The notes under the pieces are model-generated. The model searched no databases. It was given only the letters and a program-made list of their open reading frames with translations, and was not told the DNA's origin. From contig NC_135264.1 of assembly GCF_964204865.1 (NCBI RefSeq), positions 9,052,001-9,116,000 on the forward strand: DNA of 64,000 bases, given 5' to 3'. This document shows positions 3,637-60,317 of this stretch, one piece after another. The DNA is from Styela clava. Lineage: Eukaryota. How positions within the stretch are numbered: position 1 is the first letter of the stretch; every line of letters begins with the position of its first letter. The position numbers were made by a program, and so were the translations under genes.

Positions 3637-5178
3637 CTAGAAAGGCCGGAAGTTTGAATTAAGCCTTAATTCTATATGATTATCTGCAAAATGGCAGAGT
3701 AAGTCCATTGTTTTTGTTCCATCTATGTCCAATGCAAATAGTTTCTCTGAAGGATCAGTACAGAAGCTTCCGCCATCAACCTCTATGTCTCCAAACACAC
3801 CTGCTTCTGTTGTGTATCTGATTATTAGTTTTCTGTTGGACAAAATAAGTTATTGCATGTCACTTAACTTTGCAAACTGCTCTATAGAGTATGACATAAA
3901 AGTATGCATGAACACAGACAATGTGTCTCTCACACAACATATTTAAAAAAAACTCTCCTTGCTTTTTATGAATTAATCAAACATAGAGCTAATCAATTAA
4001 AAAAATTCACACATATAGATAGGATAAGATTTTTATACCTAATAAGGAGGAAGGGGCAACCGCCCCGGGCAGCACGATGTATGGGGCAGCATATCTAAGC
4101 TGTTAATATTACACATGTTTTTCATGATGTTATTTTATTCAAGTAAAAGCTGAAATTACATTTATTGTCTTCGATTGATTATGGTGAATCAACAATGGCT
4201 GACTGCCGATTCCAGCCAATGTTGCACGATTTAGCGAAGTCGATACTTCAATTACTATTACAAACATTTTATTGCCATTTATACCAACATTTATAATTTG
4301 TTCATACCCGGAATTATTTCTGAAGTTAGGTATAAAGGGGATCATCATCAGAAACTTCTATTCTATATTCTGTTAAAAGAGTTGCAATAAAAGGACACAA
4401 CTTTGAAAAATCACCTTCTGGCACTGTCTTTACAAACAAAATCATCTCTTCTATCCCCATTAACGTCTCCAAAGTAAATATCTGCACTTGCACAAGGTGA
4501 AATTTTACCTTTCCAATGTAGTTCTGTCATTGAACCAGAAGTTGTTGTATGTCCAATTGCACTGAAACATTAATTGGTGTCAACAACTCGCAGAAAATCT
4601 TATACAAATAGTATCATTCATGGTACAAACTAATACCCTTCAATGCGAAGTGGATTTTATAAATTAAGATTGAGTAGCAAAAAAAGGGTTTACGGTCATC
4701 AAGGTCTACAGTAAATTAATTATTGTCACTGTATGCACCAGACAGAAAATATCTCAGTTATGGTATAGGTAAATCACTGTCTAATAACTTTTTTACTGTA
4801 TTAACTCTCTGTACTACTTTTTACTGTTTCAAGTCTCTCTTTAATCAGTACAAATCAACTCCTACTAGACCACTCAAGACAACTCAATACTATTACCCTT
4901 TACCTCAAAAGTTAGTACGAATAAAAAAGATATGAAAAGTGAAGAGCTTGACCATACAATCCTTAGTGTATCCATGATTCTTCACAGATTTTCAAGTTTT
5001 AGTTTAAAACGTTCATCAATTTTAAAGGATAGTCAGTTGGCTTACACATTTCCGTCCAATTCAATACAAGCTGCGTCAGTTCTTCTATCCCCATTAAAAT
5101 CACCAAAATACCACTGACTACCTGCCCCACCACATAAATCTGGTACACTGTCTTCTTTTACATCAAACAAGCTGGTAT
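3637..5178 (-). CDS. Gene A C-terminal FG-GAP/VCBS-like repeats (exons 16-18)
   Basis: [32 protein letters not shown] and [16 protein letters not shown], one per exon. Ends NFRPF*. Confidence 0.8.
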
Positions 5179-8100
5179 CTAAAACATTTTCGTTTAATAG
5201 ATTAATAAAGAATATTATCAATAACAAATCATTGTATAACCAGGTTTTAATCATTTTTAGTAGGTATGGTTGTGACCATGCAAACAAAAATGTATGTTGA
5301 TTTTAAATATGCTTTGTGATAACTCAACCACATAATAAGCACTGTGGTCTCATAGCATTTACAATTATTACTAACAAAAAATTCACACTTGCTAAATGAA
5401 ATTTTACAGCTAATATCTACTGTTAGATCATTTTAACTACAGCTGCCTTGTGTGCCTTAATTATGGCCAGAAATATATTGATTAGAAACCTGAGACTCCA
5501 CTATAATTTTCTACGAATAATAAGAATCTCACTCTCATCCATTCCATCTGTCCCTCTGTTTGTGCTACACAATCCAACATTACAATTCTCTGTTTCTGAC
5601 TCAGGATTGTAACAGAATGTTCTACATGATCGTTGCCTGCATAGCAGAGATACCTCATTATTTGAACGAAGAACTGTACATGTGTGTAACTACTTATAAA
5701 CAAGATTTAGAAGCCACTAATTATGAAAACTTGACATTAGAAATATCTCATTGGGCCCTAAAATAAATTTGAATTTCCCTCAGCTTTCAATATTTATATA
5801 TAAGAAGCAAATACTTCCATCTTTTAGAGAATACAACATATACACCAATATAGAATATTTACCACTCAATATTACATTCACCTGATTCTTGTGCCATCAC
5901 AAGTAGCTGAACAACTTGACCAAAGCCCCCAATCTCCTGCATTTTCAGGCGTGGTTGTTGTTGTCGTTGTTGTGTACAATGCTGATGAATATGATTCAGG
6001 TGTTGTTGTTGTTGTCGTGTACAATGTTGATGAATATAATCCAGGTGTTGTTGTTGTCATGTACAATGTTGATGAATGTGAAAAACTTTCACTCACTGTG
6101 CATGAACCAGTATTGCATTCTCTTTTTACTGAGTTTTCGCCCGTGCAAAGCGACTGTCCGCACACTTTAAACCTTAATTAACAAGAATAGTTAAGAATAT
6201 TGGATCTCTATTTTTTTTTATAGTTTTCTGAATTTGAATATAAGCATTTTCGGTCTTAATGTGACTCCCCACTATTGATGTCCATGCAATTAGCTCATAT
6301 TTACATATTTGAATTATACTGGTAACCACATTCGAGGTCATAGTTAACTATATAATCATCAACTCGTCCTAACCAATTTCGAAGTCTGACATTCACCTAG
6401 TCTGAGTTCCGTCACAGGTGGCGGTGCAATCAAGCCAAACACTCCAAAACCAATCTTGATTTCCACATCTTCCTACATTGCATTCTTCTTTCACAGGAGA
6501 CGAACCCTCACAAAAATTATTTTCACACAATCTTTGCCTGTAGAAAAAATATATCAAATTTGAAAACATAAAAACTAATTGAATTTTTTAGCGCATAGAT
6601 GGCAAGTAATAGAATCAACAGGCATAATTAGTGAGAATATAATTGGATGCAATTGCTTAGTGCTTAGCATTTTGAAACCAGCTATATTGACAAATGATAA
6701 ATAGGAAAATGAAATAAGCATGTGAAGATTCTAGATATTTTTAATAAAACATCCATCAGTAGCTCTGATCAGGGTTAAGATGCAGGAATCAGATTGAAAC
6801 GAATAATTTCAAATAGAGATCATTTTTTTTTAATTCAAATTTACCGTAAATCATGTTCTACAATATTAAAAACTTTGAGACAAAGTGTATTAAAGACATA
6901 CTCAGTGCAATCCCAGATTACATCGGTTGGATTCTGCTGGCTTGTAGAAAATTGATTGCTAACCAATGTTCTAATAGATTAGTTACGCTATGCCAACAGA
7001 ACATATGACTGCAGTGACATCTTGCCAGGAGCCTTATTTGTAGCAAACATCTAAGGCATCGCTCATAAAATATTACAAGTAAAACCTGTAAGCATGCATT
7101 GGTGCATTTTTTTGCGTCAATACCACTGCACACAATGTGACACCATAACTTTATTAAATCTTGGCATTAAAGTGATCGCTCAGAGTTGTGGGTTCTCCTT
7201 ATGCGTGAGTGTGCATGACCAAATTCTCTTATGAAGAAAATAAACATCACCTGGATCGTGTACCATCACAGGAGGCAGAACATTGTGTCCATTGAGTCCA
7301 TGTTATTTGTTCAACAGGAGCTGTTACTGCACAATCAGTATTGCAAAGGCCATAGTATGGTATTTGATTAGGACATATTTGACCATCACATAGTTTCTGT
7401 CTGATATAGAAGATAAGTTATTATTTATAATTCAAATACCGTTTCGCAATCATGTCTTCATGAAGGATTAGGCCCAAATTCTCAACCTAAAATACAGTTG
7501 AAGAAATGTATCTTGTTTGAGAATTTAGCAGAAAAATTGGTTGATTCATGTTCAAGGATAAGAAATGTATACAATACATATATCACCTCACTCTTTTTCC
7601 ATTACAAGTGGCAGAGCATGTACTCCAAGCTCCCCAAGTTGTAGAAGTCTCAATTTCGATAACACAATCCTCCACCATACTTCCCTTACTAGCATCACAT
7701 TCTCCAAATACAGTACATTTACGTTCCCTGCAAAAATGAAACATGAAATTGTAAATTATGGTTTATCATAGTACAAGTTGGATTAAAGCAATGATCAGTG
7801 CAAGCAATTGTGGGTACAAGCAACTGATTCTGAAACCCAAGTCGAATCCATTCCCTTGGATAAGTCTAACTGGTTAATGAAACTACGTAAGTTGGTTAAT
7901 GAAACGTTTGATTCATTCCATTTAGATTAGATAATCGAAGTCTTTGACGAATGGGAATTTCATTCAACTTCTCCCTGACACTGGTAGATAGCTGTTTACC
8001 CAAAACAGGAGGAACCAGTGGCTCGTACAATCGATTTTAATATAGGATAATATTCATAAATTTTTTAAGAAAGCCATTGAAAATCTACATGAAATATATG

Positions 8101-59800: not shown

Positions 59801-60317
59801 CTAGCTGCTTGTCAAAAGCTTCGTTCAGAAAAAGATATTGCACTTCTGGAAAAAATATAACCAAAACAGAAATCATGTCATAAAAGAGATAACCTTATTT
59901 TAAATGTAAATTAATATTATTACTTACTTTAATCATTATTGTTTATTTATCATATCTGTTATTTATAATGAAGTATATATAGTACTCTGTCAGATTATTA
60001 TGATGAATTTGTTCAAGTCTTACATCAATTGGTATAGACTGCTGAGTAACACACACCCTAGTTTTTTCTCTTAGCTCTCAGCAATTGAACAATCGCTTGA
60101 TGTAGTATCTCTGAGTGTACATGACATTGGTCCAAGGAAATTCACTTTAAATAAAAACAAACATCACCTGGTGCGTATACCATCACAGGTTTCAGTACAT
60201 TCCGTCCACTGACTCCATGTTGCTTTCCCAGTTGTAGGTAGAGCTCCACATTCAGTATTGCAGAAGCCATAGTGAGGTATTCCATCAGGACAAGGTTGAC
60301 CATTACATAGTTTTCCT
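53833..60317 (-). CDS. Gene D: 3' part (exons 12-18) of a fourth paralog; 5' exons lie beyond the window
   Basis: Exons 60317-60168, 59604-59464, 58719-58441, 57044-56941, 56616-56484, 55906-55760, 54028-53833. Lengths 150/141/279/104/133/147/196 and phases match A and C; no stops seen. 63230-63272 matches gene C intron 11 near its 5' end. Confidence 0.88.
54677..55549. mobile_element. Degenerate hAT-type element (GCGGCCCC subterminal family)
   Basis: AAACTTTTGAGCTCGCGGCCCC ... GCGCCCCCTAGTTTTGGAAGCCCTGG. A similar right end occurs at 61940-62004. Confidence 0.6.
57203..58381 (+). mobile_element. Internally deleted Buster/Charlie-type hAT transposon with transposase remnants
   Basis: TIR CAGTGGTTCTCAACC / GGTTGAGAATCACTG, perfect TSD TTCTATAT. 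N-terminal MAKSRKYSESYLENGF..KPQCVLCYAVLSKEAMKPSKLKPHL and IAKQKKPHTLGETIVKP are fused to C-terminal FWCAI..YPEVS.EALRVIVPFASTHLCECGFS...IKSK. Confidence 0.93.
58505..58640 (-). repeat. Coding Thr-rich minisatellite, 3 units, gene D exon 14
   Basis: [15 protein letters not shown] / GSYSSILYTTTTP / [17 protein letters not shown]; exon 279 nt. Confidence 0.9.

Follow-up and report, generated by a model that had tools for sequence, protein, structure and literature searches.

Organization of the protease gene cluster

The analysed window, a 64,000-nucleotide stretch of the Styela clava genome, contains four paralogous protease genes in the order −, +, +, −, which share a single plan of 18 exons with the same intron phases. 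Collinear copies were located by six-frame self-comparison and by tblastn searches with the exon peptides of gene A: gene A (−) runs from 15349 to 3637, B (+) from 16223 to 24420, C (+) from 29970 to 50555, and D (−) from 60317 down to 53833 within the window. The collinear pattern of the paralogs, together with the matching RefSeq proteins, is far beyond chance. The flanking DNA completes gene D and carries a fifth copy, gene E, and the cluster thus consists of five genes. Exons 1–11 of D and the whole of gene E are located just beyond the end of the window, at window-extended positions 64205–85861. A second cluster, of four genes, lies on another contig (C9; the five-gene cluster is on contig C19).

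The splice chain was built from conserved AG/GT sites, with known frames and no in-frame stops. It provides open frames of 861 amino acids for gene A, 884 for C, and 857 for both D and E, each from 18 exons. An earlier note on this DNA had described four paralogs in −, +, +, − orientation with a common exon and phase plan, of which A and C were complete, and the splice chain agrees with this description. The count of four applies to the window, but the cluster itself has five members and gene B is truncated on either side. The outer limits given previously are true exon ends: 3637 is the stop codon of gene A and 60317 the 5′ end of exon 12 of gene D. A motif scan placed astacin zinc sites at 11129–11164 (−), 17277–17312 (+), and 33310–33345 (+), and found the TSP1 and FG-GAP-type motifs where they had been reported before.

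Gene A (LOC120333888; 3637..15349, − strand) is complete according to both the splice chain and RefSeq. The Styela clava protein XP_039257212.2 (P0001) contains 18 of the 18 exon peptides of gene A in order and is 100% identical to exon 8. RefSeq also lists an isoform X2 without exons 15–16. Gene B (LOC120333916; 16223..24420, + strand) is represented in the splice chain and tblastn matches by exons 5–15 only. It lacks exons 1–4, except for a 33-nt relic of exon 4, as well as exons 16–18, and has lost the donor site of exon 9. The corresponding RefSeq model of 369 amino acids omits exon 10 and has its start inside exon 8, past the zinc site. Gene B is likely a pseudogene.

Gene C (LOC120333887; 29970..50555, + strand) is complete. 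Fourteen of its 18 exon peptides are exact in the 884-amino-acid RefSeq protein P0020, which originates from an older assembly and differs by few substitutions. Introns 11 and 12 of gene C are long, and the region 38789–44394 holds a retroelement relic. Exons 16–18 of gene C, at 49466..50555 (+), encode its FG-GAP tail (FG-GAP_3, 27.1 bits on P0020). The 3′ part of gene D, exons 18–12, was placed by the splice chain at 53833–60317 (−; feature entry 53833..64000). Intron 11 reaches up to the window end, and exons 11–1 follow in the flank at window-extended positions 64205–71396 (−; locus L001), which together give the complete open frame of D. The RefSeq protein P0019 corresponds exactly to the exon chain of gene E, with 18 of 18 exon peptides in order.

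Membrane anchor and cysteine-containing prosegment

Exons 1–2 of gene A (14910..15349, −) encode the start codon, a lysine-rich cytoplasmic tail of 13 residues, and a signal anchor of approximately 24 residues, as determined from the splice chain and hydropathy. The Kyte–Doolittle profile with a 19-residue window reaches its maximum of 3.64 at residues 15–33, and there is no second hydrophobic segment. The single hydrophobic segment spans approximately residues 14–38, the flanking charge follows the positive-inside pattern, and the AF2 model contains a helix at residues 10–38. The gene A protein is therefore predicted to have a type II topology, with the C-terminus outside the cell and no signal peptide. 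The N-terminal membrane anchor proposed in the earlier note is corroborated by the hydropathy, the flanking charge, and the AF2 helix.

Exons 3–4 (14064..14493, −) encode an eight-cysteine module followed by the FxGD aspartate switch of the astacin prosegment, identified by Pfam and alignment. The aspartate switch blocks the zinc in astacin zymogens. The cysteines of the module and Asp109 are invariant across 17 aligned family members. From residue 105 on, the structure alignment matches the prosegments of pro-astacin, pro-meprin, and LAST-MAM. The module resembles antistasin-type serine-protease inhibitors in its cysteine spacing (C-x6-C-x3-C-x11-C-x3-C-x-C) and a CPFG-like core. However, antistasin domains have a ten-cysteine fold of two subdomains, whereas the module described here sits within a metalloprotease prosegment, and its inhibitory activity is putative at most. 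The Pfam Antistasin profile (PF02822) scores 18.9 bits on gene A, below the cut-off of 21.2 bits, and matches five of the 17 family members at E ≤ 0.05 (range of E 5e-4 to 3e-3). A sequence search of the PDB with the module gave no match, and the confidence of its AF2 model is low (pLDDT 54–59). The antistasin module of the earlier note thus stands as a conserved cysteine module with antistasin-like spacing, but its assignment to the antistasin profile remains below threshold.

Catalytic domain

The astacin (M12A) domain with its zinc motif and Met-turn tyrosine is encoded by exons 5–8 of gene A (10122..13301, −), as identified by Pfam and structure alignment. The Pfam Astacin profile scores 25–60 bits exon by exon and 150 bits on P0001. 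The HExxHxxGFxHExxRxDRD zinc site is intact in genes A, B, C, D, and E. In the alignment of 17 members, H238, E239, H242, H248, E249, four cysteines, and D109 do not vary, and Y297 is almost invariant. The Met-turn reads S-x-M-Q-Y, with glutamine replacing the usual histidine of S-x-M-H-Y. Judged by its motifs, the domain appears catalytically complete and is presumably active.

The model superimposes on HCE-1, ZHE1, meprin, and astacin with a VIA Z score of 21 and an rmsd of 2.5 Å over approximately 195 residues. In structure, the catalytic domain is closest to the fish hatching enzymes HCE-1 and ZHE1 (TM 0.82–0.84, rmsd 2.6 Å), which digest the egg envelope but are secreted single-domain enzymes of the embryo without TSP1 repeats, anchor, or propeller. 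Meprins alpha and beta share the astacin domain (Z 20–21), a cell-surface tether, and the aspartate-switch zymogen, and their function depends on the oligomeric state. However, meprin beta has a C-terminal type I anchor and dimerizes through its MAM and TRAF domains and a disulfide, whereas the anchor of the Styela proteins is N-terminal to the prosegment. A search of 1.8 billion representative sequences with exon 8 yielded no more than 14 proteins at E ≤ 0.001, indicating that the catalytic half of the protein is divergent.

TSP1 repeats and threonine-rich stretch

Six TSP1 repeats, each split by an intron, are encoded by exons 9–15 of gene A (5533..9419, −). They were recognized by six W-x2-W…C-S-x-T-C motifs, by Pfam (TSP_1, 90 bits on P0001), and by Foldseek, in which this part of the protein matches the repeats of properdin and TSP-1. 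A minisatellite with a 39–45-nt unit, found by tandem-repeat search at 5956–6077 (−) between TSP1 repeats 5 and 6, encodes a threonine-rich, mucin-like stretch. The stretch has a pLDDT below 35 in the AF2 model and is probably an O-glycosylated stalk. The succession of a metalloprotease and TSP1 repeats is also found in ADAMTS proteases, but these contain a reprolysin (M12B) domain with disintegrin-like and cysteine-rich spacers. One isoform was earlier named 'ADAMTS 9-like' in RefSeq.

Three-bladed FG-GAP tail

The C-terminal part of the protein, encoded by exons 16–18 of gene A (3637..5178, −) and ending at the stop codon, is a partial beta-propeller of three FG-GAP blades according to Pfam and AF2. 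FG-GAP_3 scores 29.2 bits on P0001, above the cut-off of 26.9 bits, and the single exons are below the cut-off. Most relatives scanned singly reach 27–42 bits; the gene E protein P0019, with 21.5 bits, is below the cut-off. The tail is modeled with 4+4+3 strands at residues 725–853 (AF2, pLDDT 74–87). It superimposes on three consecutive blades of the Psathyrella velutina lectin with a VIA Z score of 14.4 and an rmsd of 2.8 Å over 140 residues, and on integrin alpha with a Z score of approximately 9. It shares with both the blade fold and calcium loops of the DxNxDGxxD type, and each blade has its own conserved cysteine pair. In contrast to the lectin and integrin propellers, which are closed rings of seven blades in one chain, the tail has only three blades, aligned to approximately 158 of the 400 residues of the lectin. 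Closure of the ring would therefore need a partner. The FG-GAP repeats announced in the earlier note are present, and their number can now be specified as three blades.

A dimer of the tail was predicted with a score of 0.38, compared to 0.00 for the best of three controls. At least 69% of the contacts agreed between runs, the pLDDT of the partner was at least 78, and the interface is formed by blade 1 of one copy and blade 3 of the other. Of the proteins solved as pairs of one chain, 21 of 30 attain the score mark applied; of those solved as single chains, none of 23 does. For eukaryotic proteins the figures are 17 of 29 pairs and none of 30 single chains, with one of seven pairs that lack an older solved relative. 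The predicted dimer thus passed its controls, with a method that has a low pass rate when eukaryotic proteins lack solved relatives.

It is extremely unlikely that exons 16–18 belong to separate transcripts or genes merely located downstream. Isoform X2 of gene A, which skips exons 15–16, indicates that splicing in this region can vary. However, exons 16–18 lack both a start codon and a signal sequence of their own, their phases are continuous with the upstream exons, and the intron that separates them from exon 15 is short (277–627 nt in four of four intact copies). The adjacency of exon 15 and exons 16–18 is also preserved in the second cluster, and the RefSeq models join the exons. Astacin, TSP1, and FG-GAP domains are present in one chain in cDNA-cloned Ciona Tast2 proteins and in proteins from transcript-sized contigs, including a 748-amino-acid protein on a contig of 2,541 nt. 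The single open frame with an astacin domain, six TSP1 repeats, a threonine-rich stretch, and FG-GAP-like repeats, which had been read from the DNA before, is thus upheld by the splice chain and Pfam.

Relationship to the Tast family

On the basis of their sequences, the Styela genes belong to the Tast family of tunicate proteases with an astacin domain and TSP1 repeats. The cDNA-cloned Ciona proteins Tast2a (AZM68749), Tast2b (AZM68748), and Tast2d (AZM68751) fall into protein clusters whose members have Astacin, TSP_1, and FG-GAP_3 domains. They align with the gene A protein end to end, starting at the anchor and reaching as far as the final FG-GAP blade, with 33–34% identity. The BLASTP matches between A and Tast2a are collinear (33% identity, E 1e-44 from the anchor to the astacin domain; 30%, E 2e-37 from TSP1 to the tail). 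Each of the 17 aligned members gives matches to Astacin, TSP_1, and FG-GAP (E ≤ 0.05), with no variation in the cysteine knot, in Asp109, in the zinc site, or in the residues of the blades. The same head and tail motifs were found in the published supplementary sequences of Tast2.

The earlier note had pointed to the Tast proteases of Ciona sperm, a link that the homology to Tast2a, 2b, and 2d bears out. It had assigned the full architecture to no described family, but these Ciona proteins have identical modules in identical succession. A new protease family with the order antistasin–astacin–TSP1x6–mucin–FG-GAP, separate from Tast, is consequently very unlikely. It would accord with the small number of exon 8 matches, and with the Tast papers, which describe only the membrane anchor, the astacin domain, and two to six TSP1 repeats; a search of approximately 8.4 million papers found none that discusses a protein combining astacin and FG-GAP, and none of the papers found names these Styela loci. 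Against it stand the end-to-end alignments and the motifs in the published sequences. The novelty lies in the annotation and not in the proteins: the cysteine module and the three-bladed tail are real, family-wide, and absent from the searched papers. The name Tast-like can replace 'uncharacterized protein' in the RefSeq entries concerned.

The relatives include Tast2a–2d, clustered on chromosome 1, and Tast1 of Ciona robusta/intestinalis, and HrTast1–5 of Halocynthia roretzi. These proteases are tunicate-specific, and type II topology and gene clustering were reported for both genera. The type II anchor, cysteine module with FxGD, astacin domain, TSP1 repeats, threonine-rich part, and three-bladed C-terminal tail are common to them and the Styela proteins. 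The Styela proteins differ in having six TSP1 repeats, compared to two or three reported for the Ciona Tasts and for the four membrane-anchored HrTasts, in their cytoplasmic tail of 13 residues instead of approximately 50, in the Met-turn glutamine, in the mixed orientation of the genes, and in the lack of one-to-one orthology. In the tree, Styela A, C, and E group in a starred clade whose sister is Styela LOC120345409, and Ciona Tast2 proteins form a clade of their own, which fits a lineage-specific expansion. The separation of the family from other astacins is weakly supported in this quick tree (SH-aLRT 71). The five genes are probably a lineage-specific tandem array of the Tast family, in which A, C, D, and E are intact and B is truncated.

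Sequence divergence within the cluster

Exons 16–18 are 86–96% identical in amino acids among the paralogs, compared to approximately 60% in the protease part, and with a dN/dS of 0.05–0.14 they are the most constrained part of the protein. In contrast, exons 10–11, which encode TSP1-2/3, have a dN/dS of approximately 1.3. The identity of the tails could also have been produced by recent gene conversion instead of selection on function, as the contrast with the protease part might suggest. However, the dS of exons 16–18 is 0.39–0.49 in five of six pairs (approximately 0.44 for A and C; the remaining pair, C and E, has 0.18), which is as high as or above the values elsewhere in the genes (0.13–0.73). 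The tail sequences are thus old and their identity has been kept by purifying selection, and gene conversion is a very unlikely explanation.

Proposed mechanism and role

The lysine-rich tail and hydrophobic segment hold the zymogen at the membrane with its C-terminus outside, and the activating cleavage would take away both the anchor and the prosegment. Retention or targeting of the active enzyme would then have to depend on its C-terminal parts. The three blades probably join those of a second copy or of a paralog, head to tail, to complete a six-bladed ring with calcium-binding loops, resulting in a dimeric enzyme. Whereas meprin beta uses MAM and TRAF domains, the proposed dimerization module of the Styela proteases is the FG-GAP half-propeller. 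The specificity for substrates and partners may be set by the fast-evolving TSP1-2/3 and catalytic parts, and the invariant tail may be a common docking or dimerizing unit.

More speculatively, the half-propeller may close only by pairing with a second copy or with any paralog of the cluster into a calcium-dependent, lectin-like ring of six blades, making the proteases obligate homo- or heterodimers, and the cysteine knot may act as an additional, inhibitor-like lock that is the target of trypsin-like proteases of sperm. This extended scheme is doubtful. If it is true, the paired tail could account for the retention of the enzyme on the sperm, or for its docking to the glycan-rich egg coat, once activation has separated it from the N-terminal anchor.

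By homology with the Tasts of Ciona and Halocynthia, the likeliest role of the Styela proteins would be that of a sperm-surface protease acting on the vitelline coat of the egg. Mass spectrometry identified five Tasts on Ciona sperm, and a metalloprotease inhibitor and an antibody against HrTast2c stop the fertilization of coat-intact eggs only. A gamete role in Styela is thus plausible, and immunity, the other role that had been suggested, is without support in the present findings.

It is possible, although rather unlikely, that the Styela proteases act mainly outside fertilization, for example in the remodeling of matrix or tunic during metamorphosis or in haemocyte or allorecognition functions. 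Architectures that combine a protease with TSP1 repeats, such as ADAMTS, are typical of matrix enzymes. Knock-out of Ciona Tasts and inhibitor treatment reportedly resulted in metamorphosis defects, so that fertilization need not be the sole or main role of these proteases. The HrTast genes are transcribed in the ovary as well as in the testis. The sperm proteome and the restriction of the inhibitor and antibody effects to coat-intact eggs argue against a mainly non-fertilization role, as do the dN/dS of exons 10–11 and the tandem expansion, which are common in gamete-recognition genes but not specific to them. A function at the egg coat therefore remains the preferred reading.

Tast proteases are currently the foremost candidates for the ascidian 'lysin', long sought as the agent that enables the passage of sperm through the vitelline coat. 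Their best-conserved part, the FG-GAP half-propeller under strong purifying selection, is unmentioned in the Tast papers, and the prosegment contains a conserved cysteine knot adjoining the aspartate switch. The Halocynthia paper raised the puzzle of how a type II anchored zymogen functions once its prosegment is gone. The tail and the cysteine knot provide handles on this puzzle, and pairing or docking through the tail is the proposed answer. In this young tandem cluster, a frozen tail is combined with TSP1-2/3 exons that change rapidly. The contrast fits a system of recognition plus cutting, in which the rapidly changing exons point to a possible seat of species specificity.

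A cluster of five paralogous genes

The earlier note had described a cluster of four astacin protease paralogs; this observation was confirmed and extended by the rest of the fourth gene and by a fifth copy. The window DNA is AT-rich and eukaryotic in character, and contains no long bacterial-type open reading frames. A six-frame motif scan of the window identified three complete astacin zinc sites, at 11129-11164 (-), 17277-17312 (+), and 33310-33345 (+), together with many TSP1 motifs (W-x2-W...C-S-x-T-C) and FG-GAP calcium-loop motifs that are clear in two cases. All-versus-all comparison of stop-free segments and tblastn with the exon peptides of gene A delineated four collinear copies: gene A (15349 to 3637, -), gene B (16223 to 24420, +), gene C (29970 to 50555, +), and exons 12-18 of gene D (60317 to 53833, -). 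Because a whole-genome scan for the Pfam Astacin domain gave further matches just past the window end, flanks of 40 kb downstream and 20 kb upstream of the window were included in the analysis. With the numbering continued past position 64000, the 5' half of gene D is located at 64205-71396 (-; positions 205-7396 of the fetched locus L001), with its start codon at 71396. It is followed by the complete gene E at 71888-85861 (+; L001:7888 to L003:1861), which corresponds to LOC120333891 and encodes 857 amino acids. No related gene was found by tblastn with the gene A exon peptides in the 20 kb upstream of the window. The start codons of genes D and E are positioned head to head with 492 bp between them, which suggests a shared bidirectional promoter. 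Genes A and B are likewise positioned head to head.

Exon edges were placed at conserved AG/GT sites at the limits of conservation in exon-by-exon DNA alignments of the paralogs. Exon chains were searched with the known frames, with in-frame stops forbidden and phases matched, and were scored by conservation and a simple splice consensus. Two boundaries, the exon 6 acceptor of A and B and the exon 10 donor of C, were set from the paralog alignment; those of A and of C exon 10 are confirmed by matches to RefSeq. Genes A, C, D, and E share 18 exons with the same phases, and their open frames comprise 861, 884, 857, and 857 amino acids, respectively. Positions 3637 and 60317, previously proposed as the ends of the cluster, are both real exon ends in the splice chains. 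Gene B is reduced to exons 5-15. A 33-nt relic of exon 4 is all that is left of its exons 1-4, exon 9 has a 9-nt deletion and has lost its donor, and there is no trace of exons 16-18 downstream of the gene.

Database searches were performed exon by exon rather than with joined exons, and whole-protein analyses used the RefSeq protein identical to the gene A exon chain. An exhaustive protein search with exon 8 of gene A retrieved, at 100% identity, the 861-residue XP_039257212.2 ("uncharacterized protein LOC120333888 isoform X1", Styela clava), which holds all 18 gene A exon peptides in order. LOC120333891 (P0019, 857 aa) contains all exon peptides of gene E in order, and LOC120333887 (P0020, 884 aa), from an older assembly, corresponds to gene C except for a few substitutions. 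LOC120333916 (P0002, 369 aa) is a partial model of gene B whose start falls within exon 8, past the zinc site. In the RefSeq model of isoform X2 of gene A (782 aa), exons 15 and 16 (5046-5636) are left out in frame, and with them the second half of the sixth TSP1 repeat and the first FG-GAP blade. A literature search found no paper naming the gene loci of the cluster.

An open reading frame fragment at 41336-41740 (+), in intron 12 of gene C (38789-44394), matches a reverse transcriptase (RVT_1, 43 bits); the neighboring frames at 39135-42660 have no Pfam match. The 5.6-kb length of this intron is probably due to a retroelement relic. Genes C and D are convergent, and the spacer that separates their 3' ends contains a 234-bp unit in a perfect two-copy tandem (51315-51784, 100% identity). 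A short interspersed repeat without a Pfam match is present on both strands in introns and spacers, at about 25224-25307, 26589-26705, 30445-30567, 36576-36728, and 44716-44838. The window has no Rfam match.

Domain organization and predicted structure

The encoded proteins have a type II anchor, an aspartate switch, an intact zinc site, a Met-turn tyrosine, two canonical disulfides, and a three-blade tail. The N-terminus consists of a Lys-rich stretch of 13 residues followed by a hydrophobic segment of about 24 residues, with a hydropathy maximum of 3.64 and positive flanking charge on the N-side. Since this is the sole hydrophobic segment of the protein, it is a type II signal anchor. Exons 3-4 of the prosegment encode a module with eight cysteines of antistasin-like spacing (Cys module), directly followed by an FxGD motif, which in astacin zymogens provides the aspartate that blocks the zinc. 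The protease is followed by six TSP1 repeats, each split by an intron. The Thr-rich stretch between the fifth and sixth repeats is encoded by a minisatellite with a 39-45-nt unit, whose copy number varies between paralogs: 2.8 units at 5956-6077, 3.8 at 23488-23637, 4.7 at 45440-45630, and 2.9 at 58518-58634. Three repeats, each containing a cysteine pair and a DxNxD...D loop, make up the last 150 residues.

Exon-wise Pfam searches identified Astacin above the cut-off on exons 6-8 and TSP_1 with 40 bits on exon 9. Antistasin on exon 4 (18.9 bits, cut-off 21.2) and FG-GAP types on exons 16-17 (14-18 bits) remained below the cut-off; exon-wise searches under-call domains split by introns, and FG-GAP and most TSP1 halves are sub-threshold. 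In the whole RefSeq protein of gene A, Astacin (150 bits), TSP_1 (90 bits), and FG-GAP_3 (29.2 bits, above the cut-off of 26.9) were detected. A PDB sequence search with an exon 4 profile gave only chance immunoglobulin matches.

An AlphaFold2 model built on an alignment of 17 family sequences has pLDDT values of 80-91 for the protease and 74-87 for the tail; confidence is low in the Cys module (54-59) and in the Thr-rich stretch (about 25). According to Foldseek and VIA-align, model residues 137-344 match hatching enzymes, meprins, BMP1, and astacin with a Z-score of about 21 and an rmsd of 2.5 Å. Zymogen structures align to the model from residue 105, the FxGD region, onward. For residues 714-858, the match is to three adjacent blades of the seven-blade Psathyrella lectin (Z-score 14.4, rmsd 2.8 Å over 140 residues), and also to the propellers of Tc toxins and integrin alpha (Z-scores 9-13). 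With strands arranged 4+4+3, the modeled tail is a partial propeller.

A probable single transcript for the tail and the protease

Strong, although indirect, evidence places the tail exons in the same transcript as the protease exons. The phases are continuous into exons 16-18, which have no start codon, and short introns of 277-627 nt come after exon 15. Every intact copy retains the tail next to exon 15, as does a second cluster of the Styela clava genome. RefSeq models join exons 16-18 to the upstream exons, and the same tail is present in cloned Ciona cDNAs. In transcript-sized contigs from Logan (P0022, P0023, P0051-55), a single chain contains astacin, TSP1, and FG-GAP.

The genes belong to the Tast family

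Tunicate astacin and thrombospondin-repeat (Tast) proteases have been described in two ascidians. Ciona sperm carry five Tast proteins, four of which are encoded in a cluster on chromosome 1 (PMC6353882). Halocynthia has ten Tasts in two clusters, and a transmembrane segment is present at the N-terminus of four; the five Ciona Tasts were all re-assessed as type II (PMC11673157). The domains given for Tasts are astacin and TSP1 only, and neither paper mentions FG-GAP, antistasin, or mucin (PMC6353882; PMC11673157).

A search with the tail of the gene A protein (P0001) retrieved a protein of Ciona in which Astacin, TSP1, and FG-GAP_3 are combined, and whose relatives form the chromosomal Tast cluster of Ciona. 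A protein-cluster look-up identified the relatives as Tast2a, Tast2b, and Tast2d (AZM68749, AZM68748, and AZM68751), and Pfam gave FG-GAP_3 scores of 28.7-29.8 bits on these named proteins. In the published supplementary Ciona Tast sequences, the N-terminus has the anchor, the Cys module, and FxGD, and paired GDFNGD loops are present at the C-terminus (PMC6353882). BLASTP of the gene A protein against Tast2a is collinear from the anchor through the last blade (E-values 1e-44 and 2e-37). Astacin, TSP_1, and FG-GAP were matched in all 17 family members, and Antistasin weakly in five of the 17. No variation was found in the alignment at the Cys knot, Asp109, the zinc ligands, or the blade residues.

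The domain architecture that the earlier note considered unusual is thus real, but it is normal for the Tast family, in which it is cDNA-verified; it is under-described in the literature and not new. The accompanying interpretation is partly supported. The genes form a Styela cluster of this known family. A second cluster of four tandem Tast-like genes (+) is located on another contig of the genome (G000:C9:6736000-6803100, loci L007-L014). The zinc motif is intact in all four genes, and the last exon is detectable in three. The third gene, LOC120345409 (P0021, 896 aa), is 40% identical to A and has the same architecture. From the two clusters, Styela clava has at least nine Tast-like genes. 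In a maximum-likelihood tree from a quick search, with gene D left out because it has no protein identifier, Styela A, C, and E group with a fourth Styela gene, and the Ciona Tast2 proteins are separate, in agreement with the reported absence of one-to-one orthology.

Selection on the exons

Pairwise Nei-Gojobori estimates were summed per exon without joining exons. The dN/dS of the tail (exons 16-18) is 0.05-0.14 at a dS of 0.39-0.49 (0.18 for C versus E), with 0.05-0.07 for exons 16 and 18. The corresponding dN/dS values are 0.33-0.65 for the protease (exons 5-8) and 0.44-0.84 for the TSP1 region (exons 9-13). The low dN/dS at substantial dS indicates that the identity of the tails is the result of purifying selection. 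Given the synonymous divergence, recent gene conversion is rejected as the reason why the tails are invariant. Exons 16-18 are certainly coding. Exons 10-11, which encode the second TSP1 repeat and the beginning of the third (7587-8497 in A), are the only part with a dN/dS point estimate above 1 (about 1.3, six pairs of A, C, D, and E summed).

Proposed activation and pairing of the tail

The cysteines are all accounted for within modules, eight in the head and four in the protease. Since, in addition, the anchor is N-terminal to the prosegment, activation should free the enzyme from it: the activating cleavage would separate the active enzyme from the N-terminal anchor. Another part would then have to hold or target the freed enzyme, most obviously the invariant tail.

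Three blades would be too few to close a propeller. Self-pairing prediction for residues 706-861 gave a score of 0.38, and the best of three controls scored 0.00. In benchmarks, 21 of 30 proteins whose solved structures are pairs of one chain, and none of 23 single chains, passed the pairing mark; among eukaryotic proteins it was passed by 17 of 29 pairs, including just one of the seven that lack an older solved relative, and by none of 30 single chains. At least 69% of contacts are shared between runs, and the partner pLDDT is at least 78. The predicted contacts are symmetric and link blade 1 in each copy with blade 3 of its partner, in the geometry of a six-blade ring. As a prediction, this supports a possible pairing of the tail with itself. 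The tails of A, C, D, and E share 88-95% identity, which makes heterodimers among the paralogs conceivable. By analogy, the tail may bind glycans, since its closest solved folds include GlcNAc-binding lectins.

Origin of the tail and role of the proteases

It was considered whether the tail, or even the complete protease, came from bacteria. Outside tunicates, the tail is matched best by FG-GAP proteins of bacteria (Sandaracinus, Streptosporangium), and two bacterial-type proteins (P0065 and P0082) fuse an astacin-type domain straight to several FG-GAP repeats. The catalytic domain of Tasts, however, is most similar to animal astacins, and the make-up of the database could by itself account for the tail matches; a bacterial origin is not claimed. 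P0058, P0079, and P0112 are further astacin-FG-GAP fusions, and at least one of the five is on a 4.4-Mb contig.

By homology with the characterized Tasts, the likeliest role of the proteins would be sperm-side digestion or penetration of the vitelline coat. A function of Tasts in matrix remodeling is kept open by a metamorphosis phenotype, reportedly seen for the Ciona Tasts. It is likewise kept open by the transcription of Halocynthia Tasts in the ovary (PMC11673157). The immune role that the earlier note also raised gains no support from the present results. A role at the vitelline coat is in line with the presence of Tasts on sperm and with the effect of a metalloprotease inhibitor, which in Ciona and Halocynthia stops the fertilization of coat-intact eggs only (PMC6353882; PMC11673157). 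The Styela genes add to the knowledge of the family two family-wide modules that are absent from published descriptions of Tasts, and a tail that is the most constrained part of the protein and may dimerize.
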